From NCBI GenBank assembly GCA_977016875.1, contig CDRNST010000035.1, forward strand, positions 2,232,001-2,296,000: a DNA stretch of 64,000 bases. The letters run 5' to 3'. Position numbers and translations under genes: made by a program. How positions within the stretch are numbered: position 1 is the stretch's first letter; each line of letters opens with the position of its first letter. The notes beneath the pieces are model-generated. The model had not been told where the DNA came from and made no database searches. It saw only the letters and a program-made list of their open reading frames with translations. Shown piece after piece: positions 5,196 to 41,419 of this stretch. This stretch comes from Pavona decussata. Taxonomy: Eukaryota.

Positions 5196-7190
5196 GGAGG
5201 AAGATATTGCTGAACTATTTAAAAACTATTTTTTGAATATCGGGCCAACCTTAGCTAAGGAAATAATAACTAATAATAAAGATCCTACACGGTACATAAG
5301 CTCTTCACCAACATGTAGTTTTTATCTTTCTCCAATAACGGAAGCACAGGTATTTGCATGATTTACTAGTCTAAACGAAAAAAAAAACATCCTTAAACAT
5401 CCCCAACAAGCTAATTAAACTCGCAAGTGAACTTCTCTCCAAACCTTTTACTGTAATATATAACGAGTCAATACTAACGGGGAAAGTTCCTGAACTGTTC
5501 AAAATATCCAAAGTAACTCCCATATTTAAGAGTGGTGCAGTAACTGAGCTAGGGAATTATAGGCCTATAGCAGTTAGTTCTCCATTTAGTAAAGTTCTGG
5601 AAAGATTAGTATATCAGCAACTTGTCTCCTTCTTAGAAAAACAATGTCTGCTCTTTAACTTCCAATTTCGGCTTTAGAAAAGGTTATTCAACAGAATATG
5701 CCATTCTGGAAACTCTAGAAAACTTAAAATCAGCAATTGACGATGAAAAAATAACATGCGCTATCTTTTTAGATTCTTTAAAGGCAATTGATACAATCAA
5801 TCATCAGATTCTTTTAGATAAACTTAGTAAATATGGCATTCGAGGTCTTCCCCACGCATGGTTTTCAAGCTATATTACCAATCATAAACAGTATGTTAAA
5901 GTTGGTAATACAGAATCTAGCTTGAAAACCATTACATGTGGTGTGCCTCAAGGTTCCACCTTAGGGCCACTACTTTTCTTGTTGTACATTAATGACCTAC
6001 CTGAATCCTCAAAGAAACTGAGTTTTAAAATTTTTGCTGACGACACAAATATTTTCTATTCATCAAACGACCCAGAGCAATTACAAAGAGTTATAAAATG
6101 AAGAACTTGGAAATGTTTTAAAATACTGTGCAGCAAATAAGCTATCAATTAACTTCAAGAAAACCCATTATATGTTAATAACCTCGCCTAGGAAGAAAGT
6201 TGATGTTCGAGTATCGGCCTGTGACATAGAACAAAAATCTCAAATCAAATACCTGGGCGTCTTTATCGATGACTGTCTAAGATGGGATGCCCAGCTCCAG
6301 TACATTAACAACAAAATAACAAAAAACATTGGAATTTTATATAAACTTAGATACTATGTCTCTATGAATACGCTTAAACAACTATACTATACGCTCATAT
6401 ATATGTATCTTAATTACGGGTTTATGAGCTGGGGTACTGCATGCCAAACAAAATTAAAAAAGATTAAAATAAGCCATAATAACTGCCTTCGCTGCATCTT
6501 CTTTGCACACTAAAGAGAAAATGCAACACTATATTTTACTCTATTAGAAATCCTTAAGCTAGAGAACAATTTTAAGTTGAAAATTGGTTCCCTTGTGCAT
6601 AAATTACAATACAATAAAAAAGAAACACCCCCTGCACTCCATGATCTTGTTTCCCTAGCTTCTGATATCCATAAATATAATACCAGATTTGCCACTAGTC
6701 AAAACCTGTACAGACCATTTTCAAGAACTAATTATGGTTTAGCACGGTTTAGAGTAGTGGCATCACAAACCTGGGAAACAATTCCAATGGAAGTTAAGTG
6801 TCTGCCCTACAATGATTTAAAAAAAAAATACAAACTTTTTTTACTTGATAGCCAAACATAAATAATATAAAAAAAATTAACGTATACTATATACTTATAT
6901 ATTTGTTGTAAACACTTTTTTCCTTACTATTGTATTTTCCACTCCTGAGTCTAATTTAACTAGCAGAACTCTTCAACCAGCGTTATGAATTCTACTTCCC
7001 CCTACTTTTTTTAACTGCACAGAGGTAGTGGCCAACACGAAAGCTTTGCTCCTTTGGCCACTACGCAATTCTTCCGTAGAATGTAAAATTACTAAATAAA
7101 TTGCTTTGCACGTTTAAAATTTTTTTTCTTACTACAAATTATGTTGTATTTCGTTGTAACAAGTGTGAATAAAATTGAATTGAATTGAAG
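5196..7190 (+). mobile_element. 5'-truncated L2/CR1-group LINE (reverse transcriptase remnant)
   Basis: Motifs NYFLNIGPTLA, GNYRPIA, KVLERLV, QF-GFRKGYST, GVPQGSTLGPLLFLLYINDL, FADDTN, IKYLGVFID and YLNYGFMSWG. 3' tail aataaaattgaattgaattgaa at about 7169-7190. Stops and frameshifts present. Confidence 0.9.
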
Positions 7191-8819: not shown

Positions 8820-8864
8820 ACCGTGCTGACGATAGCCAACCAGCTCGAAACAGCTGTCCACGGT
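8820..8864 (+). ncRNA. Minimal type I hammerhead ribozyme motif (stem II closing pair broken)
   Basis: accgtg-CTGACGA-tagc/caacca/gctc-GAAA-cagctg-TC-cacggt. 6-bp stem I, conserved core, palindromic stem III and a GUC site (cut after 8858). G10.1 is replaced by U. Confidence 0.72.
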
Positions 8865-15824: not shown

Positions 15825-16925
15825 GTACAAGTTATTATAGTGATAATTAAAATTAAAAATGACCCTTGAAAATCTCACGCTGGGTTTTATCCATTTTATT
15901 GTAGATACTGTGCAGCAAACCCAGGAACCATTGATTAGGCCTGTGCACTGGGTCCCACCCAAACTTTGAAGTAGACAATGAAATAATGAAACGATTTATT
16001 GTCTTGGGTTTGAGTTTATTTATTTTACCACAAAATAAAATAAAGAACAAAAAGATACATGTTTGGGAAACACTGTTGGAAAATAATGTACAGCAAAGTG
16101 ACACTTATATGAAGGGAAAGAGGGAGCGGGTAGAACTTCGTTGTAAATCATGATGTAATTTCCTCATCAAATGATGTCACCGCATCCCATTACAGACAAT
16201 CCTCCAAGTGACACCTAGTCTTGACAACAAGAAATCCAGAAACTAACTATAGGCTTTTATTAGCGTGCCGCGTTGCCCCACTCTACACCCCTTAGATTTC
16301 TTACCCCCACCCGCTACACCATTCAGCTCTCCTGGCAAACATTCAATGTGAACTCCTTGTAAAACGATTGTGAACTATTGGAATAGCTTGGGGTATTCCT
16401 GCTCTAAAATTGTAATCATCTCGATGGCGTAACATTTAAAACTATACATACTTCTCAGAGCACCACCATTATTCATCATGGGTACGTCACAAAACATTGT
16501 GAAGCGATGTTGTTTTTATTAATTCATGACTCGCCAATAATTTACCGGATATTCCAGAAGGGTGCTTTGCAGTGTTCCCGATAACTTTCAAAGTCAGAGA
16601 GTCGATGAAGAATTTTGAGGGGTCAATAGGTATGGTTCTAACCCAATATTCTTCAGCTTACCATTCAATTTGATGGGTCAGGGCGTCAACTTTCTCGGGT
16701 TTTTGACCTGAGGCCCCTCTCTTAGCTGGAACACTGGCTGTGTTGACCAACTGAAAACAAAGATAAAGGTCTAGGGTAAGGGACGAACAAAATGAAAACT
16801 TCAGGTAAGCCTTAAACCTGGCTCGCCCCAGACGGCCTGGTTAGTAAAGCAACCATTGTATTCTTGTAGATCTTTAATAATGCAGCCAACTTAGATAAGG
16901 CCTCCACTGTTTGATTTCCGTTAAG

Positions 16926-17132
16926 GTTTTGACAAAAGACGGTGTGACTGTAGCAGTTGACGCTGTGGTGTACTTCCGAATATACAATGCCCCCATGTCA
17001 ATAATTACAAACGTGGAGAATGGAAACCGTTCCACCCGTCTGCTAGCACAGACTACCCTGCATGATGTGCTGGGAACCAAGAACTTGAGTGAGATCTTGG
17101 ATGAAAGAGAAACAAAAAGTGAGACTATGCAG
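16926..17132 (+). CDS. STOM: Stomatin-like copy 1, exon 5
   Basis: ag|VLTKDGVTVAVDAVVYFRI...STRLLAQTTLHDVLGTKNLSEIL...MQ|gt, 207 nt. Confidence 0.93.
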
Positions 17133-22925: not shown

Positions 22926-23050
22926 TGAATATGAATGTATTAAACATATATTTTGAACTGCGGATGAAAGATTAAATAGAAGAAAGATCCTCGCAGTTAT
23001 TACGAACTCACAATATGACCAGCTCCCAGTTGGCTTGATAGCTCAGCTGA

Positions 23051-23092
<42 letters not shown>

Positions 23093-23175
23093 ACGTTCAA
23101 GCCTGAATTTTTTCAGGCTTTCTTTTCGCAATTGCTTAAGTTGCTTACTATCTGTGAGTATTTTTCTTCTATTTA
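22926..23175 (+). mobile_element. tRNA-derived SINE-like repeat with 12-bp TSD
   Basis: TSD atattgaattca (22914-22925 and 23176-23187). tRNA-like core 23032-23103 with GGCTTGA/TCAAGCC acceptor stem and A/B boxes. Inverted arms taaatagaagaaa/tttcttctattta. Confidence 0.85.
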
Positions 23176-24839: not shown

Positions 24840-27260
24840 AGAAGAAAATCCATATATTCCTCTTCCAAGAGAATTTGCTTTGAAAAAAACATAGTTAATA
24901 TTCAAAACAAAGATAATGAATATTTTAAATGGTGTATCTTGCGATATTTAAATCCTCTTGAGAATAATCAAGTGAGAATTGGTGATTTGAAAAAAAAAAG
25001 ATAATTTAAATTTTGATGGGATTGAGTTTCCAGTTAAACTTGATGATATTGAAAAACTTGAAAGACGAACTACTGATTTGACAGGAATTAATGTTTATGG
25101 ATACGAAAATAAAAAAGATTTATTTACTTAAAATTAATATAAGAGATACTTGCAAATCTATTGATTTGTTATTAATATCAGACGATAAAACGAAACATTA
25201 TTGTCTAATGGTGAAATCAGCTCACAAATTAATAAACACGATGGGGAAAATATTTTTGTAAAATGTGTTTTTCTCATTTTGACAAAAAAAGAATTGTTGG
25301 AAAAACACGCTACATTTTGTAAGTCAAATAAACCTGTCAGAATTGACATGCCCAAGCATCCTCTTCTTTGTTTTAAAAACCATAATAGAAAAGTAAAGAA
25401 GCTTTTTGTGGTGTGTGCTGATTTTGAATGTTTTACAAATTCGATTCAGAGTTGTTCTCAAAATCCAGAATCTTCTTTTACTGAAAAATATCAAAAACAT
25501 ACTCCATCTGGATACTGTTTGATTGTCAAGGCTGATGATTCAATAAAATGTGAAATGGAACCCTTTATTTATTCAAAACAGGGTGAAGAAGATAATGCAT
25601 CAGAAGATTTTGTTCAAGATCTTCAAATACTTACGAATAAGACAAATTTCCAAAAAAAAAAAAGGAATTGTGGCAAAAGAAGATAAAAACAATTTTAAAA
25701 CGAAATTGTATGTCATATATGTGGTATTGAATTCAATTCACAACCTTTCGGGATTTGATTCTCATCTTTTTATTAAATAGTTATGAAGAGGTGGAGAAAA
25801 TATAAAATGCATCCTAAACGCGAATGAGAATATATTTCATTTCCAAAGATTTAATAGTCGACAAATTCAAGTTGGATGAAAAAACAATCAATACCAGATT
25901 TGAATTAACCGTTTCAAATTCCTGTCAACACGTTTGGTAAGTTTAGTCAACAAACGTGAGAAAAAAGTATGAATTAGATCCCGTTTATTATTACACTGCT
26001 CCCGATCTTGCTTGGGATGCTTGTTTGAAGCAAACAATTACAACTTTTACAACTTTTATAAGATTCTGAAATGTTGCTCATGTTTGAAAGAGGTATTCGA
26101 GGAGGAATATCAATGATACCAAAGAGATATGCTAAAGAAAATAAGAAGTATATGAAATATTATGATCCTTCTAAGCCATCCAAATTTATCCCATATCTTG
26201 ATGCAAAAAATGTCAAGATAACTTTCAACAGGAGAATTTGAATGGATGAAAAAGAAAGAATTAAGTAACTGGGACAAATTTAATGAATGTGAAGAAAAGG
26301 CTTGTATTTTAGAAGTTGATCTCGAATATTCTTCCACATTACATGAAAACATGATGAATATCCTCTTGCTCCTGAAACAATTAAAATCAATGGTGACGAA
26401 AAATTAATTCCGCATCTTGTACCGAGTAAGAACTATATATTGCATGCTTCAAATTTACGTCTTTACACTGCTTTAGGAATTTTTTTTAACATAAATTCAT
26501 AGAGGAATAAAATTTGATAATAGTAATTTGCTTAAACCATATATTGATTTGAATACAAATATAAGAACACAGACAAAATCTGAATTTGAAAAAGGTTTCT
26601 TCAAACTAATGAATAATTCTGTTTTCGGAAAAACGATGGAAAACATTCGAAACAAAGAACATGTAAGATTGGTTAACAATGCAAAACAAGCAAGAAAATT
26701 AGTGAACAAGACAAATTTTAAAAAACTAAACATATCAAGTTGATAAAAATCTTATTGCGATACATATGAAAAAAACTTGTTTTCAACGAACCTGTTTACT
26801 TGGAAATGTGCATTCTTGATATTAGCAAATAACTAATATCCGAATTTCATTATAAGTGTATCAAACCAAAATGCAAAGAAAAAGCACAACTGTTATTCAC
26901 AGACACTGATTCATTAATGTATGATAGAGAAACGGAATTTACAAGGATATTTCTCAAGATGTCAAAAAAACATTTGATACCTCCAAAGTTTCTAACCAGT
27001 CATCAGGAATTCAAACTGTAAAGAGTAAAAAGATCATCGGTATGTTTAAAAAATTAAACCGGTGGTAAAGAAATAACGGAATTTGCCGGATTGCGATCAA
27101 AACATTTTTCTATTAAAATTGATGGGGAAGAGGGGTGAAAGCTCTGCAAGAAAAGAAATATAAAGGAATTAAAAAGGTGGTTATTAAAAATGAGATAAGT
27201 TTGGAAGATTACAAACAAGGTTTATTCTCTGAAGGGGAAGAAATGAAAAATGTTAATTTA
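24840..27260 (+). pseudogene. Protein-primed DNA polymerase B of Polinton/adintovirus type, frameshifted
   Basis: Motifs YIPLP..VNIQNKDNE.FKWCIL, VCADFEC (ExoI), HNLSGFDSHLFIK (ExoII), [50 protein letters not shown] and LFTDTDS. Confidence 0.92.
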
Positions 27261-28130
27261 AAAGCATTATTTTTGCCTTTTGTTACTAAACTTAAATACA
27301 AATGCAACTTTAATGAACTCGCGTAAACGTGCGTACCCTCAGGACTCTAGCGAACATTAATATGCGAAATAGACTCTATTTAAGTGAATGAGCGAGTTCT
27401 AAATGACTATCATACGTCCGTCGAAAGAAACGAACTAAGGGGTAAGTTGTTTAAACTTCAGTCAATTTCCATTATTCTAAGCGCCCTCAAAGTTCCATAG
27501 TTCCAGGAAGCCTATAGTTTATAAGCCCCCGGCTTCTATATAGGCTTCCTTGCCTTTACCACATTTGATTTTGTAAACAATTATGTAGGAATATTGTATA
27601 TTATCTTTAATGTATTTCTGTATACTGTTGTTGTATTTCTGGTTAATGGCAAAATAAATGAATAAATGAAATAAAAGAATAAAGTATTGTTAGCTTTCTT
27701 TCAGTGATTTGACAAAACGCCGCTGCTGCTGCTAATGTAAAAATCCCCGACGGTGAAATAAAGTTATCAACAAGAAATATAAATATTATCAAAAGTGACA
27801 AACATGACATCACTTGTAATAAAGTTACATCGTCAGGAACAGAGAGTAAGCGAATAATAATGTATGACAAGATACACACTCTTACATATAATCATTATAA
27901 ACTTGTAACCTGATTCAAGAAAATAATAATTATTTTCAAATAAAAAATGGACAAATATATCGAATCGGAAAAGTCCCCTGACAATGAAGATCCTGCTGTG
28001 GAGCAAAAATTGGAAACAAATATGAGGAACGATGTAGTGGTAATTTTCGAAATGAATCGGTGTATCAAAGAAAATATCGCGTACGGAAATTTTTCAATGA
28101 AATGAACATCCCTGGGGAAGACAAGGATAA

Positions 28131-28306
28131 AATAAGCCATTTCCGAATTGTTGCAAACCTCATATGAAAGCGAGGCTAAGTGCCAAGTTTTCATTAGGAA
28201 AATTAGTTTTCATTCATATGCAAACAAAACTAATTTTAAAATCAAAAGCTTTGCATTTAGCTTCGCTTCCATAATGAGGTTCACAGCAACTCGGAAATGG
28301 CCTATT
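28131..28306. mobile_element. Short MITE inserted in a Polinton ORF
   Basis: TIR aataagccatttccga / tcggaaatggcctatt. Absent at the paralogous site (~1635). Confidence 0.8.
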
Positions 28307-29039
28307 AAATTATTTGTTTATAAGTAATGGAAGAATTTATTTCGCAAGTTGATAAAGAAAGAAAAAGAATAATTCCCTTGAAATAAATCATAAAGCGAAT
28401 TCTAAATCTTCTTCATGCTTATAAAACAAAATTAGAATACAAAAAGTGGTGCTCAGAAATTTATGAATTACATAAAGATAAAATTGATAGAATAATATCA
28501 GGAAACAACGTTTCAAATTTATAGGTTGAAAACCCTGTTAAACTGTTTTTCAAAATTTATCGGAGGACACAGGTCAATTATCATTTCATCCAATAGCCTC
28601 TTATTGTTATAAAATTTGCGTGATTAAAATGATTCCCTCTCAGAAAAGATCTGAAATACACCAGTTCTTTTTTTTTTTTTTTTGATTAGTTGTGTAAGCA
28701 AACTTGCCTACTTCGATTTTCTTTTTATAACTTTTTATTTTAGAAAATGTTTTCAATAACAAACCTGATCCGGAAATTATTCCCAATGATATTGGATTCA
28801 AAGTTATTCCACCCCACTATCGTTCCAATGACGATAAGAGAGGTGAAAGCCGTATTGATTTATAAATTGATTTGCTTAAACTGTTCATAAGTCTTTTTAT
28901 GACATTAAAATTGCTTGTGATAAAATTTGTACAAGGATTTAATCTCTTCCAATTTCTCTTTACTCATATTGTTATCGATATGATTGAAATCCAAAAAGTT
29001 TTTAATTTATTGAATGATTATATATTATATATCATATAT

Positions 29040-30150
29040 TATATCAGTCATCATTTTTCCATTTTCAACCACAAAAGCTGAATCGTATACTTATAGATCA
29101 ACCGAGGAAAAATAATCTTTGACACCATAAACAATCAAATGTCCAGTTGTTGAAAACGTTGTTTTGCAATGCAGATCAAAATATATATATATAATCAAAT
29201 TGAACCAATGTTTTTGTGTATTTATTCAAGGTTTTTTTTTTTGTTTGTTTGGTTATTGATAGTGTGGTTCCCACAGCTGTTACATTGATATTTGTCATCT
29301 CTGGAGGAAAAAATTCAAGAACGATGGTATAATATCCTATTGGAATCTTGTAAAGATTGAATCCAATCCTGGATCCGTTATCTTTGACGAGTGTTACTTG
29401 ATATGTTTTTTTTGTTCAACCGATGTGGTATGTTTGCATAATCTACGATTCCAACGACCTGAATGTTGTTTTCCAAACTATTGTCGTCAATATCTTGCAT
29501 CAAGCATCTGAATACGTCTTTTTTTATTCCGAGGATGAAACATGACACTCATCCACATATGTTTTGTCTACATCTTTATCACTTGTAGGATTACCAACAT
29601 TTAACCTTATTGTCACACCAATCATTGTATCCTTGATTTACTTTTGCTATCTCATCATCAACGTATCTTTTATGAACAGCTTCATAATTCAAATAAGGAT
29701 TTTTATTTAAATTAGTTATTTCATATTAATCGGACCTTGCAGTGTGCCTCCATGTTTGTTAAACTTTAATTTCAATTCTGCTACTCTTGCGGCGGCGGAT
29801 GGGTCTTCGTGGAATTTCAGAGATCTTATTCTATTTCCTCTCATATCCAAATCCCCACCGATAGCGCCACCTGTTAATTTGTTTAAGAAATTACCATCAA
29901 CATAATTCTTTGAAACAGCATCAGCATTTTCCGTTGGATTAGGAACCTCACTATCATGAAAAATCTTTTTTCCGGTAATTGTTTGATCTCTGGAAGTAAC
30001 CATTACTGCTGATCGTCTATTTCCATCAAAACCATCATAGGTCTTCAAATTGACCAGGCGGACCTCTTGTACCTTTGGATGCAAAATATCTTTTATTTTC
30101 TTGATTAGAGTTGAAGAAACTCATTTTATTTTTAGATGATATTATCCGTA
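29040..30150 (-). pseudogene. Fibre/spike-like repeat protein of the Polinton-like element
   Basis: Repeats VPNPTENADAVSKNYVD, GGAIGGDLDMRGNRIRSL, GGTLQGPINM, AVHKRYVD and NPTSDKD..KTYVD. Frameshifted. Confidence 0.55.
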
Positions 30151-30169
30151 GAAATGTTTTGCAAATATT

Positions 30170-30749
30170 TGTTTAGGCTTGTCAACATGGTTCTTTAGTT
30201 GCTTGTGAAAATTGTTCCACTCCCAACTCTCTTGAAATCATTTTGCTTTCATTGCTGCTTGGAGAATCATAAATGCAATAATGCGAACAGTTTATTCTAA
30301 TATTTTTCAGAGTCTTGTAACAAATTTGAGATGAATATATTACAGAGCAATTTTAATGTCTTCCTTGAATAAAATAGTCCACCAATGGCTTTTGATTTTT
30401 TGCGCGAAAAAGGTAATCAAAAATGACATTTTTTGGCTTTCATTGTCTAAGTCATTGACAGGAAAAATACCATCATTGCTTGGAAGAATAACATTATAAC
30501 CAGCTTGCTGACTACTTTTTCAAATTTATTTAACATATTTTGGTACTTTTCCTGTTCCAGATTTTTGGCATTAAGATGAATTTTGTCATGATACGATAAT
30601 GGTTTCATCAACATGTGCACTAATAGATTTGTTTTTCCACAACAAGTGTTGCAGCAAATTAGCATTCTGAAAGTGTCTTGAGGCATACAATGAAAAAAAC
30701 GTTTGAAATTATTGTTTTTCTTTCTGGAATCATAATTAGGAATGTCCAT
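30170..30749 (-). pseudogene. A32/FtsK-like genome-packaging ATPase of Polinton/adintovirus type
   Basis: FRMLIC..CGKTNLL (degenerate Walker A), and downstream YFIQGRH* and NIRINCSH. Stops and frameshifts present. Confidence 0.85.
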
Positions 30750-30874
30750 TTTATTATATCTTCAGGTAAGGTATATATCTAAAGTTAATATAAAAAGATT
30801 ATACAAGATTACAAGAATACAACAGTTTGGTAGAACCAATGATTAAAGCAGGCGAAATTACAAAGCTCGTAATA

Positions 30875-31172
30875 AGAAATAATAGGTAAATTCAAGGACG
30901 AAGCATGCAGAGTTCCTACACAATGAGTTTATTGGAGTGAGAAGTAAGATGATACATAAAAGACAATGATAAAGGCAGTAAAACAGCAAAAGGAAGAAAG
31001 AAAAATGTTGTAAAAAAGGACATCAAACATGAAGGCTATAAAAATATGTTATTTAATAACAAACAAATGTATCATAAAATGAAAACTATCAGAAGCAATA
31101 ATCATCAACTTGGAAGCTATGAGATAAATTAAGTGTCATTATCATGCTTCGACGATAAACGATATATCCTTC
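30875..31172 (+). pseudogene. Second, distinct Polinton PolB C-terminal fragment
   Basis: IGKFKDEA..NEFIGVRSKM..KTAKG.KKNVVKKDIKHE..TIRS..H.L...EIN*VSLSCFDDKRYIL. Confidence 0.82.
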
Positions 31173-32517
31173 TCAAACTCATCAATAATTCATCAAGAGA
31201 AAACAAAGAAAATCACTACGTGACCGTGGTTTGGACATGTGATCCTAATCACCATAAAATTTTGCCAACTTTAGCCTTGAATTTCTTCAAGAATTATTGA
31301 TCATTTGAGAAGCCATATCAAACACTCGAAAGAGTGTTTCATCAGATATCCAAATACCTCGAAGTCGTTTGAAAAAACTCGGCTGCGCCTCGTTTTTTCA
31401 ACCTACCACTTTGCAACTATCTCAAAGTAAGCGGCGTTTTTCACAGATTTTACGCAATTAAGCTGTGAAAGTTACACACAATTTTATACTAAATGTGGAA
31501 AACTATGTGCCATCATTTCGTTTCTTTAACAAATCACACCACTGTCATTTCACTTAAACACAATAGGATTCTGATGACCAACTTCCTCGGGAAAGTCCCT
31601 GTGGTGTGACATCATTGACTTCCTGTTTCTGGGAATGTCACGCTATGGTGATTCTTTCCTGTTCTTTTTGAAAAACATAGGGTTTCATATTTTTAGGCCC
31701 AACAGATGAAAATGTAGTATACGAGTTGGCACTGTAAGTGATCATTTTTTAAAATGTTCTCGTACCGCCAACTCATAAATTACTTCCAGAAAGGCGTAAA
31801 TTATCCATTCATCTTGAATCTCTCCCTTGAAGCCAGCAGGTGAATGTTAACACGGACGCCTCACGTGATATGAATTGTAAAAGTGTAATTATGATCGGCC
31901 GGTGAAAATCATTCAGCCAGAACAAGTGCTTGCTATGACATTGTGTTCCAGTTTAGCAGGAAGGGTTGAAGGATCCTAATGGCAAATAATCAACTAACAG
32001 AACGCAAGGAAAACGTCGCCGTTCAAGAAGCAAGTAAGTCAATAGTTAAACTACTGACGCCTTTATCGTTTGTATCTTAATCGCACTTAAATGTACGCTA
32101 ACAAGAAAACGCGCATTGTAAGCTATTGCTCGTGAAATAAGGAAATAATTTCACTTGTGTTTTGTCAAAATTCTTATAATTTCCCTCGCCTTTTCACGCG
32201 TATACCATTTGATTACCTTGTAATATCATGGGTGACAAATAAGGCTCACAATCGTGGTCGCTTCCGTCTTGTTTACACACCCAAGCAAAAAAACCATCGA
32301 GTGCTTTATCCAACGGGTCAGGAAGAACCGTCTAAGGGTTTTTCTGAAGGATATTTTCATCACACCAGTTCTAAAAAACCCTCACCCAGTTAACTGTACT
32401 CTTTCGCGTATTTAGGTTTCGTATTCACGCGCTATGACGTGGACGGATGTCTGAATTTGGGCCCATCCAAAATCACTACCACGTGCATTTGGTAGACCAC
32501 TTGACTCGCGTTGGTTG

Positions 32518-32558
32518 CGTGCTGACGAGAGCCGACCAGCTCGAAACAGCTGTCCACG
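32518..32558 (+). ncRNA. Minimal type I hammerhead ribozyme (intact core)
   Basis: cgtg-CTGACGA-gagc/cgacca/gctc-GAAA-cagctg-TC-cacg. All core nucleotides present, 4-bp stems I and II, palindromic stem III and a GUC site (cut after 32554). Confidence 0.82.
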
Positions 32559-32913
32559 GTTGCCGCATTCTGTTGATTCTCGGTTTGGCTTCTATTCTGT
32601 CGCTGTCGTGTTAAGTTTCTACGCAGTCCGATCAGCCTTGCAGAAATTTGAGTCATTTAGGTTTTCTGCAGCGTGTTTTAATGCCGTGACTACATCGTTA
32701 AACCTTGACGCCATCTTGGCGCTGAGATATAGGAAACGTTGCTATAGCAATTTTGTAATTTCACATTAACGCTGAAATTTCGCGCCAAACTTAAGGAGTC
32801 ACCCATGATATTACAGCAAGAATAGAACAATCCATCTACGAACCGCCTTTAAAATCTGTCAAAAGTTGGTCAGTGAATTGTTATTTTCCGTTCAACCTGA
32901 TCGCGTTGTGTTA

Positions 32914-33195
32914 CAGTACGACTAGTGTTACCGGGGTCACACAAAGTTGACCAATCACATCACAGGACACTCCCGCAAAAGTCCATCGAACCAATCATCC
33001 CTTTAACCAAAGCAAGCAAAGATACAAAGTTTTCACAACGAGCTAAATCAGAGGATTCTTTGCCGAACATTTTTTTTTTCAGTTGATGAGAAATTAATAT
33101 TTAGATTTGGCTCAGAGAATCACGTAAAGACAAGTAGAAGGTAATACTTAAAAAGAAATAGAAATTCAGTCCATGATCTTGCAAACGCCGGCGCC
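32914..33195. mobile_element. Left-arm remnant of the foldback MITE seen at 9243-10982
   Basis: ta|CAGTACGACTAGTG... matches 9243-9540. The remainder is missing. Confidence 0.75.
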
Positions 33196-33560
33196 GGAAT
33201 TTTCGCTCAAAGTGTCATTGTACAATTGATACATCGCAGACAAACGACAGAGAGACATTTTGAAGCGTGTGAGGTCTAATATATACTGTACATTTTCGTA
33301 TGCTCTTTCGTTTGGCGTTAAAATGCAAATTACTGTAAATCATGTTTTCCTTTTCTACACTTCTGGCGAGAATGACGAAGCCAAGACATATAAAATTACT
33401 TATAAAAGCCACTTATTTTCAACCTGAAAACATTTAATAACTGTGATCATTATTGCGTCCATAATGTGTTCTTTGCAGTCTTTGCCTTCTGTTTAGTGTT
33501 GGTTTCCAACACTTTTTGTTTTTGTTTTTGTTTTTTTTAATTTTTTTTGTTTGTTCTTAG

Positions 33561-33826
33561 ACCGCGTGGTTCCCGTAGATCGCGTGGCTCCCGTAGTTAA
33601 CGTGGTTCTCAAGGTTTTTCGGGTTGTCGTGGTTGTTCTCGTGTGTCTGATTCTCTTTTTCGCGTGGTTCTACTACTTCATTGTTTCTTCTGGGGCTTCT
33701 ATGTTTGTCAAGTTTCCCACGGTTCTCGTGTTTTTATTTGTTCTTGCGTTTCTCGTGATTAGCGTGGTTAAAGCGGTTGACGATCTTTTGGCTCTCGTAG
33801 ATCGTGTGGTTCGTGGGCTCCGGTAG
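33561..33826 (+). CDS. Putative orphan hydrophobic exon, copy 2
   Basis: ttgttcttag| phase 1 acceptor. LILFFAWFYYFI aligns with LFILFLWFFNFI of copy 1. Confidence 0.3.
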
Positions 33827-34385
33827 ATCTCGTGGCTCTCGTAGTTATCGTGGTTCTGGTTCTCTGGTTCTCGTGGTTCTTAAGCTTATCTGATACTCTA
33901 GTTTTGTAGTTCTCGTGGCTCTTAGGATTCTCTGGTTCTCTGGTTCTACAGGTTCTCTGGTTGTCCTTCTCGTGGTTCTCTGGTTCTCGACTCCTCGTGG
34001 CTCCCGTGGTTCTTATAGTTCTTTGTTGTCGTGTTTCCTCCTTCTTGCGTGGAAAACCATACATATGTGTTACCGCGACAGTCATGATGCCAGCTGTGGA
34101 TATTACACCGGAGATGAGCCAAGTTCTGAAACAAAAAGGTATATTGGTTACTTTAACAGGATTTAACAAATTATACAACTACCAATTAATTAGTATGAAC
34201 TGTACATGTGTTATCACGGAAGCTTGTAAGGATTGATTATTTAATTTAATTTGTTTTAAGTTCACGGTTGAAAAGTAAAGAAATTTGGTAAACTTTGTGT
34301 TAACCATCTAAGATGAATTTTGTTTGCCAGTTTCTGTGTGAACTCTTCAGTCCTGAACTGGTGCTGTTGTTGTTTTTCAAAAATC

Positions 34386-36185
34386 ACGGTTCTTTGTCTT
34401 ACCCTGTATTGACTCCTATCAGAAAGTGGATTTGAGAGTGGTGTCATTTGACGTACCACCCCAAGAGGTACAAGTTATGCATCAGTCAATTCCAACAGAT
34501 CCCCCCACCCCGGGCTGACCCCGGGAATTAGGATTTTTTGAAAATAAACTGGCAAATGCCCCTCCGCCGGGACAAAATAATTGTTCAAATGCCCCTGGGT
34601 GGTGGCTCAAACATGTCAAAAATGTTTCATTTTCGTCGTTTCTCGTCTTACTTTCAGTAAAATCTAAGCTAATTCAGACCAAATTAAGTCATAGCTGCGT
34701 CTTGTTTCCCGTAGTTAGTGGAAAAATAGGTCATTCTACAACTCTAGCGTCCCATTTTATGTCCTATCTAGACGTATTCAATAAGAAATTTACTGTATTT
34801 TCAGATGAATTTGTCATTAAGGAAGCGACAATGCTGTAGGGTGAAATTAAAAAGTGAGGTGGTCAAATGCCCTGGGGTAATTGGGTGGAAGGCTAATGCC
34901 CGACCCCCGTGATGGACAGTGTGGGAAAATGCCCCTCTATTGCCCGGGAAGGATGGGCACGGCTGGAATTGACTGATGCATTATTATAGCGATAATTAAA
35001 AATAAAAATGATCCTCGAAAATCTCACGCCGGGTTTTACCCATTTATTGTAGATACTGTGCAGTAAACCCAGGAGCAAATAGGCTTATGCACTGGGTCAC
35101 ACCCAAACTTTGAAGTAGAAAAAACATGACACCAGAAAGATTTAATGGAATGAAAAGTTGATTTATTGTCTTTTGATACGTTTGGGAAAATCTGTTGGAA
35201 AATAATGTACAGCAAAGAGAAACTTATGTGGAGGGTAAGAGGGAGTGGGCGGATTACTCCTCAGTCATAAATCATGACATAATTTCCTCATCAGATGATA
35301 CCACCATTGCAGACATTATCCTCCAAGTGTCGCTGCTATAGCTTTAAAACCTGGTCTAGATAAGGATAAACAAGAAACCCACTAAAAAAAACTAACTAAA
35401 GGCTTTTTTTACCATGCCCCTTTTGCCCCATATTCCGTTGGGTGCCCCTGCTATATATATAAACGCAAGACGAGATTCATCCCCAGTGTTATTACCAGGC
35501 TGCGGCCTTGCGGGATTCCCACGGGAAAAATTGAATGGCACATAAGAAGCCACGAAAAGGGCGCCCTAGGATGCTTAACAAACCAAATCGACTTTCAGAA
35601 GTTAGTAAGTCGAGAAATTTTTCGACCAAAAAGCGAATACTCCAGCTCAATTTGAACCCTATTATTATTCCCAAATCAGCACCTAATCAAATAAGTTCCC
35701 ATCAACTAGAGAGCTTGGCAAAGTCGAAGGGGTTCAGTAATCCCAAAGGATTTTCTCCAAGACAGTTAGTGACCATGAGGAACTCTGACCCAATCGATTT
35801 CCTGCGGGGCCCCCTTTTTCTTTCAGCAAAGGGGCCCTAAGGCTTCACAAGACAAAATCCTGGTAAGAGCAGTGCATGGCCATGGGCTTTCCCTGTCTGA
35901 CAAATGTGAAAGTAAGTGTAGGGAAATAAGGATTGCAAGATGTTTTTAATATACTGGTACCTAGCTTGCTTGTTTATTTCCTTCAGGTGATTGCTGCCGA
36001 GGGAGAGATGGATGCATCTCGTGCACTGAAGGAAGCTGCTGAAATCATTTCAGAGTCGCCGTCTGCTCTTCAGCTGCAATACTTGCAAACACCGACCACC
36101 ATCTCTGCTGAGAAAAATTCAACCATCCTTTCCCCCTCTCTCTGTCAATTTTTTGTCCAGATTTCTTCCAAATGAAGGCAAATGA
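34386..36185 (+). pseudogene. STOM: Stomatin-like copy 2 pseudogene (only exon 4 and exon 7 remnants)
   Basis: Exon 4 remnant ~34386-34467 has lost its acceptor AG. Exon 7 at 35987-36185 has a 1-nt frameshift near NSTI. Exons 2, 3, 5 and 6 are absent. Confidence 0.9.
34478..34980. mobile_element. PIF/Harbinger-type MITE, TTA TSD
   Basis: tta|TGCATCAGTCAATTCCA...TGGAATTGACTGATGCA|tta. Empty site at ~15832 in copy 1. Confidence 0.88.
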
Positions 36186-36304
36186 CTAGCTGGACAGTGT
36201 GAAGACAATAGTCGCCTTTAACTGAATCAGTATTCTTTAAAATCAGATTATTGTCTGAATACAACTTGGAATGCTTCCATAGTTTAAGACTTATTGTTTA
36301 CACT

Positions 36305-36845
36305 CAGGGGCGTAGCGTGGGAATTTGAAGATATACGCACGAGAATAAATTTTCGTAAGCGCCTTTGGCGCTTTAGGGTCTCGGAAATGCCATTTCCTGG
36401 TTGTTCTGCGGGGCATTTTCAATAAATAATGCGGCAACAATGCAGTAGAAAGTTGTTTATTTTAACCATTTCCCTAGTGTTTTCTGTAAGCTATAGTGGC
36501 TGAAAAGAGAAAAAATACAAAAACAATGAAGCAGGTCACAAGCAAAGGGCGAGGCGTCGGCCCTTAAGACGGGCAAATTCCGTAACCAACTTGTCAATAT
36601 CCACGTTCTTATGTTTATGTATTTGAAGGATTGCTAGGGAGCTTAATCTTTCGTCCGTCATCGTAATAGTTATTAGTGGCCAGCACTGAATGATTAATAC
36701 TTGGATAATGGAAATTTTTATAAGAAACGCCAGTATAATGTGAAAATATGAAATTATTACCCAGCAAATTTAATGAGAAAATTTTTTTTCTCAGATTTCA
36801 GCTGTACGCACGGGCGCACGTGCGTATATGGACGCTACGCCCCTG
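36305..36845. mobile_element. hAT-like MITE (CAGGG ends) with 5-bp TSD
   Basis: acact|CAGGGGCGTAGCGT...ACGCTACGCCCCTG|atact. Empty site tttatactgtg at ~21712-21722. Confidence 0.85.
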
Positions 36846-38053
36846 ATACTGTGAAGTACATGTAGGCTTTGGTTAGTCACAGCATCTTGAGACCGTCACT
36901 GGCTGTTTGTCTTTTCCACAGTTAGGCACGAAAACAAAACCTTTCTGGCTTGCTGGCATATCAGATGATATGCACGACAATACCCTCAGCTGAAAGATTG
37001 CCCTCAATATTTCAAAGGTTCCCTCAAAACTTTGCTTTTAGGCCAACTGCTGTTTTTTTCTAGAACGTCTTTCAGCCTCGGCCTCGGGCAATATCCTCAG
37101 ATATACCAGCCGCCTGAAGGGATTTGTTTACTAAATAATAGTAAAACCAGGATACCATACATGTAGGCCCTTTAGTGTTCCAGATATATCATAGATTCCA
37201 TGACAGCCAATTAGCAGTAACGTATGAATTTATTAAATGTTGTGTTTTATAAGAAATTTGGTTAAGCACCTTAAAGGTGAGTAGAATTTGCACACCAATG
37301 TGTGAATAAAAAATAGAAAGTAATTACCATTAAATGATAAATAAGAAATTGCTTTGTTTGGGTCAACTGTCACTTCAACAATGTGGATGTTTCAACAACA
37401 TGTCAATTGAACAAAGATAGTGCATACACCAGGCCAGGGACCCTGTATCAAATTTTTAGTAAATGTTATTAACCTGCTCTTTCAAACTATACGTTATAAT
37501 ATTCCTTAGAGGTCCACTAGAGAGTATGTTTATTCAGATCATTCAGTTATGTTAAAATAAATAAATGTCTGTCTACCTGATGATTCTGTCAGTCATTGGT
37601 GTTTCAATAAACCTCAAGGTTTAAGCTCAGTTTCAATAGGGTAGCTGTTGATATTTTTTTGTCTAAATATAGATATATAGGTCAGCATTTGAGCTATGGA
37701 CAAACCCGTGCACTCAAACTTCCCAGGGGTAACACCAGATACATCAGCTCTTCTCCCGAAAAAGACCATTTGTAATAAACCAAGCATTGATTAGAAAAAC
37801 TACAGTGGCTGTCTTAATGACTTTGATGTATTTGAATAATTTTATTATTAGTTCATTTAAAGTTCGCTAGGTTATGTGTTCATTATGCTACAACTAAATT
37901 ATATAGAAATATAATAGACTTTAGTCTGACCGTATATAATATGCAATCTGTAAAACAAGTAAGTTGTAATCCTAAATCTGTAGGTTCTGATGAATAAAAA
38001 AGTGTTTTGGCCTCCAGCTGTCTCTTTTTGTTTTTGTTTTTATATTGAATTCA

Positions 38054-38141
38054 TGAATATAAATATATTAAAGATAAATTTTGAACTCTGGATGAAAGAC
38101 ATAATATGACCTGCTCCCAGTTGGCTTGATAGCTCAGTTTG

Positions 38142-38178
<37 letters not shown>

Positions 38179-38265
38179 CAATCCCACTCAGCCTGAATGT
38201 TTTCAGGTTTTCTTTTCGCAACTGCTTAAGTTTCTTACTAACTGCAAGTATTTTTCTTCTATTTA
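38054..38265 (+). mobile_element. tRNA-derived SINE-like repeat, paralogue of 22926-23175
   Basis: Same TSD atattgaattca (38042-38053 and 38266-38277). tRNA-like core 38123-38193. Confidence 0.85.
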
Positions 38266-39949
38266 ATATTGAATTCAATCCGTTTTATTGTGTGACAGTG
38301 TGCGTTGAACATTTAGTGTTACGTACTGGGGGAACTCACTCTTCACCTACATTTCGAGTTCGACAACGCTCAACCGGGTTAAACATGGAGGACGAATCGA
38401 AATGTTGTGGGAATGGTGGGAATTTGATTGAATGTTGGAGCCAAACTCTTTTTTGTTTTGGGGCGAAACCTCCTGCCCTTTCAACTGGAACTAAAATAGA
38501 GCTGGGCTGATGGGATCTGAAAAAACTAGTTTTCGTGCTACTCAGTCAGCGCCAGCGCCCAAATTACGGCATTCAAGGAACCCATTACCCTGGCTCCTGG
38601 CATATGTTGATTATTCAGAAAGCAGCGAAATCAATTTTCAAAACAGTTTTCAAAATCAATACGTTTAATTAAATGTTCTGCTACTGAATATGCTTTAGTA
38701 TCACGATCATTGTCATTTCTATGTCCGTGGATAAGAATATTGTACGCGAAAGTGTTTGGTTGCACCTATGTCCTGATTGTTGTTTTTTTATTTTTTTGCG
38801 GAAATGTGACAGTTTTAGTTACATTTGAATAGAATTTAAAAAGTTTCAGCTAGCTAGCATAGATTTTGAGCATTCCGCTAATATTTGCATATTTAAAAAA
38901 ACTAGCATAATTTAGGGCCCAATTTTGGAAAAGCAGAAGCTCTGTCAGTGGCATTAATACGAGCACAATCTGTCCCCCAGCCCACATCCCCGGGTATCAT
39001 TTTCACATTGCCCCTCCCGGGGGTCGGACATAATTAAGTCCACGTACCAAGGAACATTGGACGGCCTTGTGATTTGCACGTCATGGCTTTCTAATTTCCT
39101 TTGAATGGTAAATTCGAGGTGGGGGAAGGGGAAGGGTGGGTGGGCCTATTTGATTTCTTATTCTACTTCAGCGTCAACGCTGAATCGGCTACGCGAATGA
39201 TGTCATTACGATGCTTCAAGCCAATAATTAACTTGTTGGGTTTTCCATATACTACAATCATGATAATATCTGTCTGTTTTCACCCGTGAAAAGTAAAAGT
39301 TCTTTCTTCAGGATATTTTCTGGTGTGATGCTAATGAATTTAAAGTAGTTATGTGTAACTGGGAGTTTCGGTGTGAAAGTAAGTGCTAGAATTAAAGCTG
39401 AAAGAAAAAATATTAACAATACCCTATGAAATGAGATTAAGTAGAGTAGAAGCCCACGAGAACTAAAGAGAACGGGTGTCCCCATATTCATATTCCGTAT
39501 TTTTTCTTTCAGTTACTATACACAAACTGATGCTGTATTATCAAAATCCCTAACAGGCTTCTCGTATTTGTGTATTGCCAGTCTTGTATTTCTATCCTGA
39601 ATTCCCTGATCATGTCTTTTGTGGTTTTTGGCGTTTCAGTTCCCATGACTTCTCTCTCTATCCAAAACCACACGGGACACAAATATCGTTTCTAATATTG
39701 CCTTCAAATACGATACTTTTTTCGCCATACAAACCCTTGTAATTTTATTATTACGCATTGGTCATCTTGATGCTCAAATGACCTAACGCTAGTGTTTACG
39801 TTATGGTAAAGAGCTAGAGCTTGCGTCACCTGTAGCATTATCAAAATCCCTAACAGGCTTCTGGTTAATGTATTGCCTGTACACCAGTACGTATTGTATT
39901 TTTATATTTACTTCTATGATCATGTCCGCTGATATGACAAAGTATAGAC

Positions 39950-41419
39950 CTATACTGAGAACAGAAATTCAGGAAATTGGCCTACAGTAGAAGACGTTCC
40001 GTTAGCTAGCCGTGAAGTGTAGTCTAAAAAGGTAAATGTCACACCATTGCACAGGAAAGTACTGGAGCCACTCACTCCATTCCCAGACATTGGACCACAT
40101 ATTAATGCTTCTATCTGGTACTTGATGTTCTTTTTTAAGTCAACTGGAGAATCAAACAAAACCTCAAATCCATGATATTTTTCGCGTTTATATTGCAGAA
40201 GCTTTGAAGAAAATGTTCCTGACTTTGAGACAAGCAGACACAAATTGTCGATGTCACTGGCATCTTTTATCTCTAAGGAAACGGTGTAGTTATTATTCTC
40301 ACTGCCAAATAAACAAAGTCCATGCAACGTCACATCTTTGTCTACAGTGACACCAAGAAAGTCTTTCCGCCCTCTACCATAACCCCAGCTAGCGACTATA
40401 ACCGATTCAAATCTGTCACATCGGTGAAAGACTACAGTCTTGGCTCTTGTTTCAGGCTCGATTAATACCAGCTGCTGTTCGGGAAATGAACCCACGTTCA
40501 CCTCCGAACAGAGTCTCTCAGGCTCGGGAAGGAAAGACGGACTCGAGGGAGCGGAGGAAATTGTTCTTGTTCCTGATCGTCTGGTTTCTGGAAATCCTAC
40601 TGGAGAAGTCAGTTTTGAACTGAAGAATTTAAAAAAGGTCACCTCTTCATTTCGAGTAAGAATGCCTGTATCGAGGACAGCAGAGGCAAATTCTTCCTGT
40701 TTCAACACTGGAAATCGGATTGCTTTTATGATATCTTCGCCAAGAATCCTTCTTTTCAGTGCACCATCTGCTGCTAAGCCTTGTTTTTCGCATTGTTTTG
40801 TTGCCCACAGATCAACAGCTTGAAATAAATCGATTTCTTCAATGCACAGAGTTTCTCTTGCGACTATTTCTTGAAGTAAGGATCTCTCAATTGTCACAAA
40901 TCCATCCGATTTCACTGCTACTTCTAATTGTTCATCGATTACTTTCCAGCATTGATCGAGCAAGGCTCTCTCCTCATACTTTTCGGCCATTGGCAAAAAA
41001 TTGAAAACATTTGACGGAGCTAGATTATTTTGCAAACATTCCGTGCATTTCACAGCGAGTGAAGGCACCATGTATTTCTTCGCCAAGTATAACACTCTCA
41101 TCGACACATCACTTCCGCTCAAATTCACTTCATCGCTGTACATGTAACGAAACAACTCCAACACACTCTCGTAATCACAGTCAGGCAGTTCAATGGAGTC
41201 TCTAGTCTCCGCTAGCTCACCGTAAAACATGTTTTCAAACACAGGACTGCCAATCGACAGCACAAATTTGTGAGCTGGAATCACTTGATTACTTTCACTT
41301 TCACCATCACTCCTACGAACCACAAACTTCACATCGCTGAAGAGATCGTTGTTTAGCAGGAACTTGGTTCTTTCCCTGATGGTGGGTTTTGTTGTTTGCC
41401 AATTTTCTGGAACAGACAT
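39950..41419 (-). CDS. BTB/POZ-BACK-PHR protein (BTBD1/2/3/6 family, BTBD6-like), single coding exon, 489 aa
   Basis: Uninterrupted ORF with BTB (FSDVKFVV..IPAHKFVLSIGSPVFENMFYG..LYLAKKYMV), BACK (EIDLFQAVDLWA..IRFP) and PHR (WGY..GLCLFG..VTFTF..NGTSSTVGQFPEFLF). Confidence 0.93.
   Translation of the reverse strand: MSVPENWQTTKPTIRERTKFLLNNDLFSDVKFVVRRSDGESESNQVIPAHKFVLSIGSPVFENMFYGELAETRDSIELPDCDYESVLELFRYMYSDEVNLSGSDVSMRVLYLAKKYMVPSLAVKCTECLQNNLAPSNVFNFLPMAEKYEERALLDQCWKVIDEQLEVAVKSDGFVTIERSLLQEIVARETLCIEEIDLFQAVDLWATKQCEKQGLAADGALKRRILGEDIIKAIRFPVLKQEEFASAVLDTGILTRNEEVTFFKFFSSKLTSPVGFPETRRSGTRTISSAPSSPSFLPEPERLCSEVNVGSFPEQQLVLIEPETRAKTVVFHRCDRFESVIVASWGYGRGRKDFLGVTVDKDVTLHGLCLFGSENNNYTVSLEIKDASDIDNLCLLVSKSGTFSSKLLQYKREKYHGFEVLFDSPVDLKKNIKYQIEALICGPMSGNGVSGSSTFLCNGVTFTFLDYTSRLANGTSSTVGQFPEFLFSV

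Follow-up and report, generated by a model that had tools for sequence, protein, structure and literature searches.

The hammerhead motif at 32518-32558 (+) of the 64-kb window, the whole stretch of DNA analysed here, is most probably (about 0.85) a decaying type I ribozyme in a truncated insertion of a non-coding, Penelope-type or retrozyme-like family, the ∼485-bp unit of which has hundreds to >1000 copies in the genome. Helix I of the motif pairs CGUG (32518-32521) with CACG (32555-32558) in 4 bp and is followed by the core CUGACGA (32522-32528), helix II in which GAGC (32529-32532) pairs with GCUC (32539-32542), loop 2 of sequence CGACCA (32533-32538), the GAA (32543-32545), helix III, which is the 8-nt palindrome ACAGCUGU (32546-32553), and C17 (32554), with cleavage predicted at 32554/32555. 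All conserved positions are kept in the window copy, namely C3 U4 G5 A6 N7 G8 A9, G12 A13 A14, A15.1-U16.1, and H17, which correspond to 32522-32528, 32543-32546, 32553, and 32554. The type I topology with its three helices, the G10.1-C11.1 pair, and the GUC site are likewise all present. An earlier note on this DNA had read the core, the G10.1-C11.1 pair, the GUC site, and the palindromic helix III from the sequence; that reading is borne out, and the note was right both in calling a hammerhead and in relating it to ribozymes of the Penelope and retrozyme type.

The full Rfam Hammerhead_1 model (RF00163) aligns to 32516-32560 with 32.3 bits (E 1.9e-6, 301 nt searched), so the Rfam check suggested in the earlier note succeeds as a full-model alignment but falls 1.7 bits short of the gathering score of 34 bits. 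Because its score is below this cut-off, the hammerhead is missed by the default Rfam scan of the whole 64-kb window, which returns two tRNA-like matches only. The Rfam alignment flags two non-standard pairs in helix I, which is limited to 4 standard pairs since G-G and U-U mismatches follow them. A score under the gathering threshold, and the fact that a ∼32-bit match alone is not significant in a 602-Mb genome, might suggest that the motif resembles a hammerhead by chance and has no ribozyme ancestry. The likelihood of this is close to nil: intact family copies reach 42.0 bits with all pairs standard, which effectively refutes it, and a strict hammerhead pattern has one match in the 64-kb window, for which shuffled sequence predicts 0.02.

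The tRNA-like sequences lie at 23032-23104 and 38123-38195 (+), at paralogous positions of a duplicated unit, and score 50.4 and 42.2 bits with the Rfam tRNA model. Similar matches are found beside GIY-YIG ORFs at two other loci (L047, 603-675; L052, 1184-1256). Instead of functional tRNA genes, these sequences may represent parts of a retroposon that carries a tRNA.

The motif had been taken for an orphan ribozyme, a description that does not survive comparison with the genome. The proposed copy-number check, in which 32400-32700 is compared with its own 602-Mb assembly, reveals a dispersed multi-copy repeat with 1052 first-look candidates; 40 of these were scored and gave 46 matches, most of which span window positions 32418-32656 at 79-89% identity. 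At up to two mismatches, the hammerhead 33-mer has 439 genomic copies compared with 0 for its reversed control. The 33-mer adjoining the ribozyme is retained about as well (396 copies), and the copies therefore decay neutrally. Four intact copies (L005, L010, L016, and L033) score 42.0 bits with Hammerhead_1 and have only standard pairs and a 6-bp helix I; the family ribozyme is therefore a clear member of RF00163, of which the window copy is a degraded version. Type I hammerheads are abundant in this genome, with 50 of 74 scored candidates above the cut-off. In the literature and its supplements, the exact ribozyme sequence returns unrelated primer matches only.

The limits of the insertion are defined by the sequences on either side of it. 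What the earlier note described as a non-coding ‘cassette’ at ∼32435-32650 is a 5′-truncated transposon insertion of 234 bp at 32420-32653 (+), which corresponds to ∼351-612 of the reference stretch L004. It is flanked by a 10-bp target-site duplication of the AT-rich sequence ATTTAGGTTT, with the 5′ copy at 32410-32419 and the 3′ copy at 32654-32663; the latter partly overlaps the usual 3′ end of the family (...GAGTCATTTA). The insertion divides an older dispersed repeat into a left part (32129-32419, 321 first-look candidates), the matches of which stop at the insertion point, and a right part (32654-32820, 273 first-look candidates), which is contiguous with the left part at L050 and four other loci. 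Alignment of L050 to both window junctions reveals an empty site at 5700-5775 (-), in which a single ATTTAGGTTT joins the left flank to the right flank. Since the target sequence is present once at this uninterrupted locus, the hammerhead-bearing piece is identified as a 234-bp insertion with a 10-bp target-site duplication. At the other four loci (C62, C42, C161, and C40), for which the two flanks were searched separately and the match coordinates compared, the left and right matches abut with a 3-nt overlap, as predicted for a single copy of the duplicated target. Across the family, target-site duplications are clear in just 2 of ∼12 independent insertions, L023 and the window copy, and a systematic search among the sampled copies does not rise above mismatched controls (mean longest shared word 5.6 versus 5.3). 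The older host repeat (32129-32419 plus 32654-32820; 5548-6024 of L050) has ∼300 candidates in the genome, and many of its copies carry short inverted 5′ segments.

The sampled family copies differ in where they begin and agree in where they end. On the L004 stretch, their 5′ ends fall at 113, 137, 185, 209, 225, 253, 260, 272, 302, 325, 328, and 351, the last being that of the window copy, and the 3′ end common to nearly all of them is at ∼598-613. As read from these aligned ends, the combination of graded 5′ ends with a fixed 3′ end is the 5′-truncation pattern of target-primed reverse transcription. L004 itself contains 1.26 units, with a 125-bp terminal direct repeat at a spacing of 485 bp and an inverted fragment directly at its 5′ end; similar inverted partners accompany L006 and L007. 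Among the first 100 listed ribozyme copies, most are single, the close inverted pairs are head-to-head (-/+) in seven out of seven cases, and one same-strand pair is present (on C12, 491 bp apart). The sampled copies and their immediate surroundings contain no long ORF. Insertion as partial tandems (pLTR-like), inverted copies in head-to-head orientation, and 5′ truncation are all observed in the family, which, on this sequence evidence, behaves like a non-autonomous Penelope-type element or a metazoan retrozyme.

A larger, 3.3-kb hammerhead element suggested by a first view of L010-L021 is rejected, as these loci represent a ∼5-kb element with 970-bp terminal inverted repeats in which one subfamily of the hammerhead unit is a nested passenger. 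The ∼5-kb element, seen at 1955-6870 of L032 and 1546-6546 of L033, has no long ORF and has arms that are 98% identical. It carries the nested hammerhead unit and is itself amplified (L010-L021).

Comparison with the family shows that the window copy has lost 23 nt between 32517 and 32518 (+). The loss is visible in family alignments and in RNA-library contigs, which extend past 32517 with the missing family letters TTCTACTTTTTGCTGTGCTACAC and then CGTGCTG. The deletion removes the outer two pairs of helix I and the neighbouring bulge, which shortens helix I from 6 to 4 bp. In canonical type I hammerheads, a loop-1 element makes contact with loop 2, and the deleted bulge seems to resemble this element; loop 2 of the window copy also differs from the family by an A-to-G change. 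The window contains a second, paralogous hammerhead in the other stomatin unit at 8820-8864 (+), which retains a 6-bp helix I and scores 31.0 bits in Rfam. In this copy, a U at position 10.1 (8833) breaks the G10.1-C11.1 pair. With 32.3 and 31.0 bits compared with 42.0 bits for intact family copies, both window copies are ∼10 bits lower.

The two hammerheads belong to a duplicated unit in which 1-23859 of the window corresponds to 26549-38664. As the copies at 8820-8864 and 32.5 kb have common flanks, they derive from one insertion that predates the duplication; the copy at 8.8 kb is joined in its group by a third one, L003 on C110. The different defect in each paralogue implies independent decay since the stomatin unit was duplicated, as in neutral drift, and the independent decay of both argues against a host role. 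The window copy is most likely without host function and probably has little or no cleavage activity on its own.

The second stomatin unit (26549-38664) is a shortened, degenerate duplicate that retains the exons near 34402 and 35993. Two exons of the first unit, the FRLGR exon at ∼15285 and the Band_7 core exon at 16917-17129, have no counterpart in it. Elsewhere in the assembly, the order and scores of the stomatin (Band_7) exon matches at C110:827170-937792 mirror those at C35:2223795-2320195, which could mean that C110 is another haplotype or that it arose by a large, recent duplication of this region.

The earlier note had proposed that the ribozyme cuts read-through transcripts between stomatin units. 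In such a case of host exaptation, the hammerhead would cleave read-through RNA or pre-mRNA that runs from one unit into the next and thereby insulate the units from each other, a role that suits its position on the stomatin-exon strand, ∼1.9 kb upstream of the exon at ∼34402, and the intact state of every core nucleotide in the window copy. This role is highly improbable, as the damage differs between the paralogues (the 23-nt deletion in one, U10.1 at 8833 in the other) in a pattern of neutral decay, and both have fallen ∼10 bits under the intact family copies. The unit that would be insulated downstream is a degenerate stomatin copy without at least the FRLGR and Band_7 core exons. Local fold prediction weighs strongly against the hammerhead shape, and the RNA contigs over the site carry family-type letters rather than those of the window copy. 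The proposal is thus unsupported, and the motif is better regarded as the remnant of a mobile family.

The folding evidence consists of predictions that contrast the window copy with the family. In cofolding, the predicted minimum-energy structure of the family sequence is a domain-swapped hammerhead dimer; that of the window copy is not. Within 121-141 nt of context, a share of ∼1e-9 of the window copy and of ∼4e-5 of a family copy is predicted to adopt the hammerhead fold. As tertiary contacts in the hammerhead core do not enter these folding energies, the two values are informative only relative to each other. Many RNA contigs, from coral metatranscriptome libraries and from runs of the source organism, cover 32470-32666, and nearly all of them show family letters (for example at 32596/32597) in place of those of the window copy. 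These RNA data are assembled contigs, which are free of ends, strands, or circles, and the summed contig depth over a repeat of >400 copies is confounded with copy number or DNA carry-over. A separate repeat at 31091-31484 of the window has a summed RNA-library contig depth of up to ∼72,000 (X2), with many strand-switch joints near 31354-31406.

The genome provides many candidates for an autonomous Penelope-like element (PLE), with 933 GIY-YIG candidates and ORFs of up to 1041 aa that often occur in inverted pairs. When 11 PLE ORFs of this genome are compared by tblastn with the window and 33 family loci (L001-L033), no relevant match is obtained, in agreement with the earlier note, which saw no Penelope RT or GIY-YIG ORF in the window; its observation that the window has no visible tandem monomer also holds. 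The window does contain an uninterrupted 489-aa ORF at 39950-41419 (-), the N-terminus of which is BTB/POZ-like by eye. Eight long-ORF GIY-YIG loci resemble the family unit at neither the nucleotide nor the protein level; they yield tRNA-like matches but no hammerhead that exceeds the cut-off. The unit is also without similarity to the PLE-ORF loci L034-L053, a small sample of the ∼933 GIY-YIG candidates. As an autonomous PLE that shares the family sequence was not found at the eight sampled loci, we infer, rather than observe, mobilisation by a PLE.

These searches bear on the possibility that the family is a pLTR fragment of an autonomous PLE, the ORF-bearing master copies of which were not sampled. 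Hammerheads are conserved in the pLTRs of PLEs (PMC4209133), the genome has many PLE ORFs, and just 40 of >1000 candidates were scored per search, all of which would accommodate such an origin. It is nonetheless unlikely, since the near-full copies L030 and L028, together with the 1.26-unit L004, close at ∼485 bp and leave no room for an ORF. Pairs of same-strand ribozymes ∼3-4 kb apart are absent among the first 100 listed copies, no PLE protein similarity is found within 1.5 kb of 30 family copies, and no GIY-YIG match lies within 6 kb of a ribozyme copy among the matches listed. In L030, a hairpin at 2214-2296 has weak similarity to bantam and mir-81 precursors (39.2 and 35.8 bits, well below the cut-offs), which is probably due to chance.

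The family ribozyme resembles the canonical metazoan type I hammerhead (RF00163; Schistosoma, newt, and coral type) in its core, GUC site, and helix lengths. Metazoan type I hammerheads typically combine a 6-bp helix I and a 4-bp helix II with a short helix III that ends in a palindromic loop, and those in which helix III is short and palindromic depend on dimers for efficient cleavage (PMC4209133). An intact family copy has, like RF00163, a helix I of 6 bp, a helix II of 4 bp with a 6-nt loop, and an 8-nt palindromic helix III. The window copy departs from the canonical form by its 4-pair helix I, lost bulge region, A-to-G change in loop 2, and score of 32.3 bits. The family ribozyme also differs from the minimal hammerheads of PLEs, in which helix III is absent and helix II is longer, by its full helix III hairpin and 4-bp helix II.

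At the level of the repeat unit, the family shares features with two known systems. Type I hammerheads occur in corals by the thousand, partly in retrozymes; in Acropora millepora, >6000 such motifs are present, and the 1508 canonical ones among them lie within 220-240-bp tandem retrozymes that are expressed as circular RNA (PMC7229834). As in metazoan non-LTR retrozymes (Cervera and de la Pena 2020, PMC7229834), the unit is short and non-coding with a canonical-looking type I hammerhead and lies in a cnidarian-type genome, partial tandems are present, and family-type sequence is found in RNA libraries. In contrast with published retrozymes of 170-400 nt, the unit measures ∼485 bp, and its copies are mainly dispersed 5′-truncated singletons and head-to-head inverted partners rather than long tandem arrays. 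The latter features are those of PLEs (PMC4209133; Frangieh et al. 2024, PMC11167929), with which the family shares insertions of more than one unit, head-to-head inverted partial copies, 5′ truncation, an AT-rich target (ATTTAGGTTT in the window), and a hammerhead with a palindromic helix III. In purified form, a PLE enzyme nicks both strands of the DNA and extends them, acts on AT-rich targets, and produces partial tandems (PMC11167929). Unlike autonomous PLEs, the family has no RT/GIY-YIG ORF at the sampled loci. Animal retrozymes have been proposed to be non-autonomous PLE derivatives (2026 preprint, bioRxiv 10.64898/2026.07.22.740005).

The mode of amplification that best fits the family would begin with multi-unit transcripts that are processed by the ribozyme, with the palindromic helix III pairing two motifs into an active dimer. 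A Penelope-like RT/endonuclease, supplied in trans, would then copy the RNA into the genome, and such copying would yield 5′-truncated copies, partial tandems, and head-to-head inverted partners. The window copy would have landed in the older repeat upstream of a stomatin gene and later been duplicated together with the stomatin unit. Neutral drift would have followed, with the loss of 23 nt beside helix I in this copy and mutation of G10.1 in the paralogue.

For ribozyme biology, the finding is of little consequence, as coral genomes are already known to contain thousands of type I hammerheads in retrozymes and Penelope-type repeats. Its value lies in annotation: even a hammerhead that keeps its core intact and seems to stand alone beside a gene can be the relic of a truncated, nested transposon, and the tests that decide such cases are copy number, the empty site, and paralogue comparison. 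The family could also represent a cnidarian intermediate between retrozymes and Penelope elements, defined by a ∼485-nt unit, a hammerhead of the canonical tertiary-contact type, and spread mainly by dispersed, 5′-truncated and head-to-head insertions of Penelope style instead of tandem arrays, an idea that is very unlikely to be correct. If it were true, decayed sense-strand copies might be cleaved in trans through helix III pairing with abundant family transcripts, and copies cleaved in this way might occasionally cut host read-through RNAs. The co-occurrence of a canonical hammerhead with Penelope-style insertion signatures modestly strengthens, in a non-vertebrate, the case for retrozymes as non-autonomous derivatives of Penelope elements.
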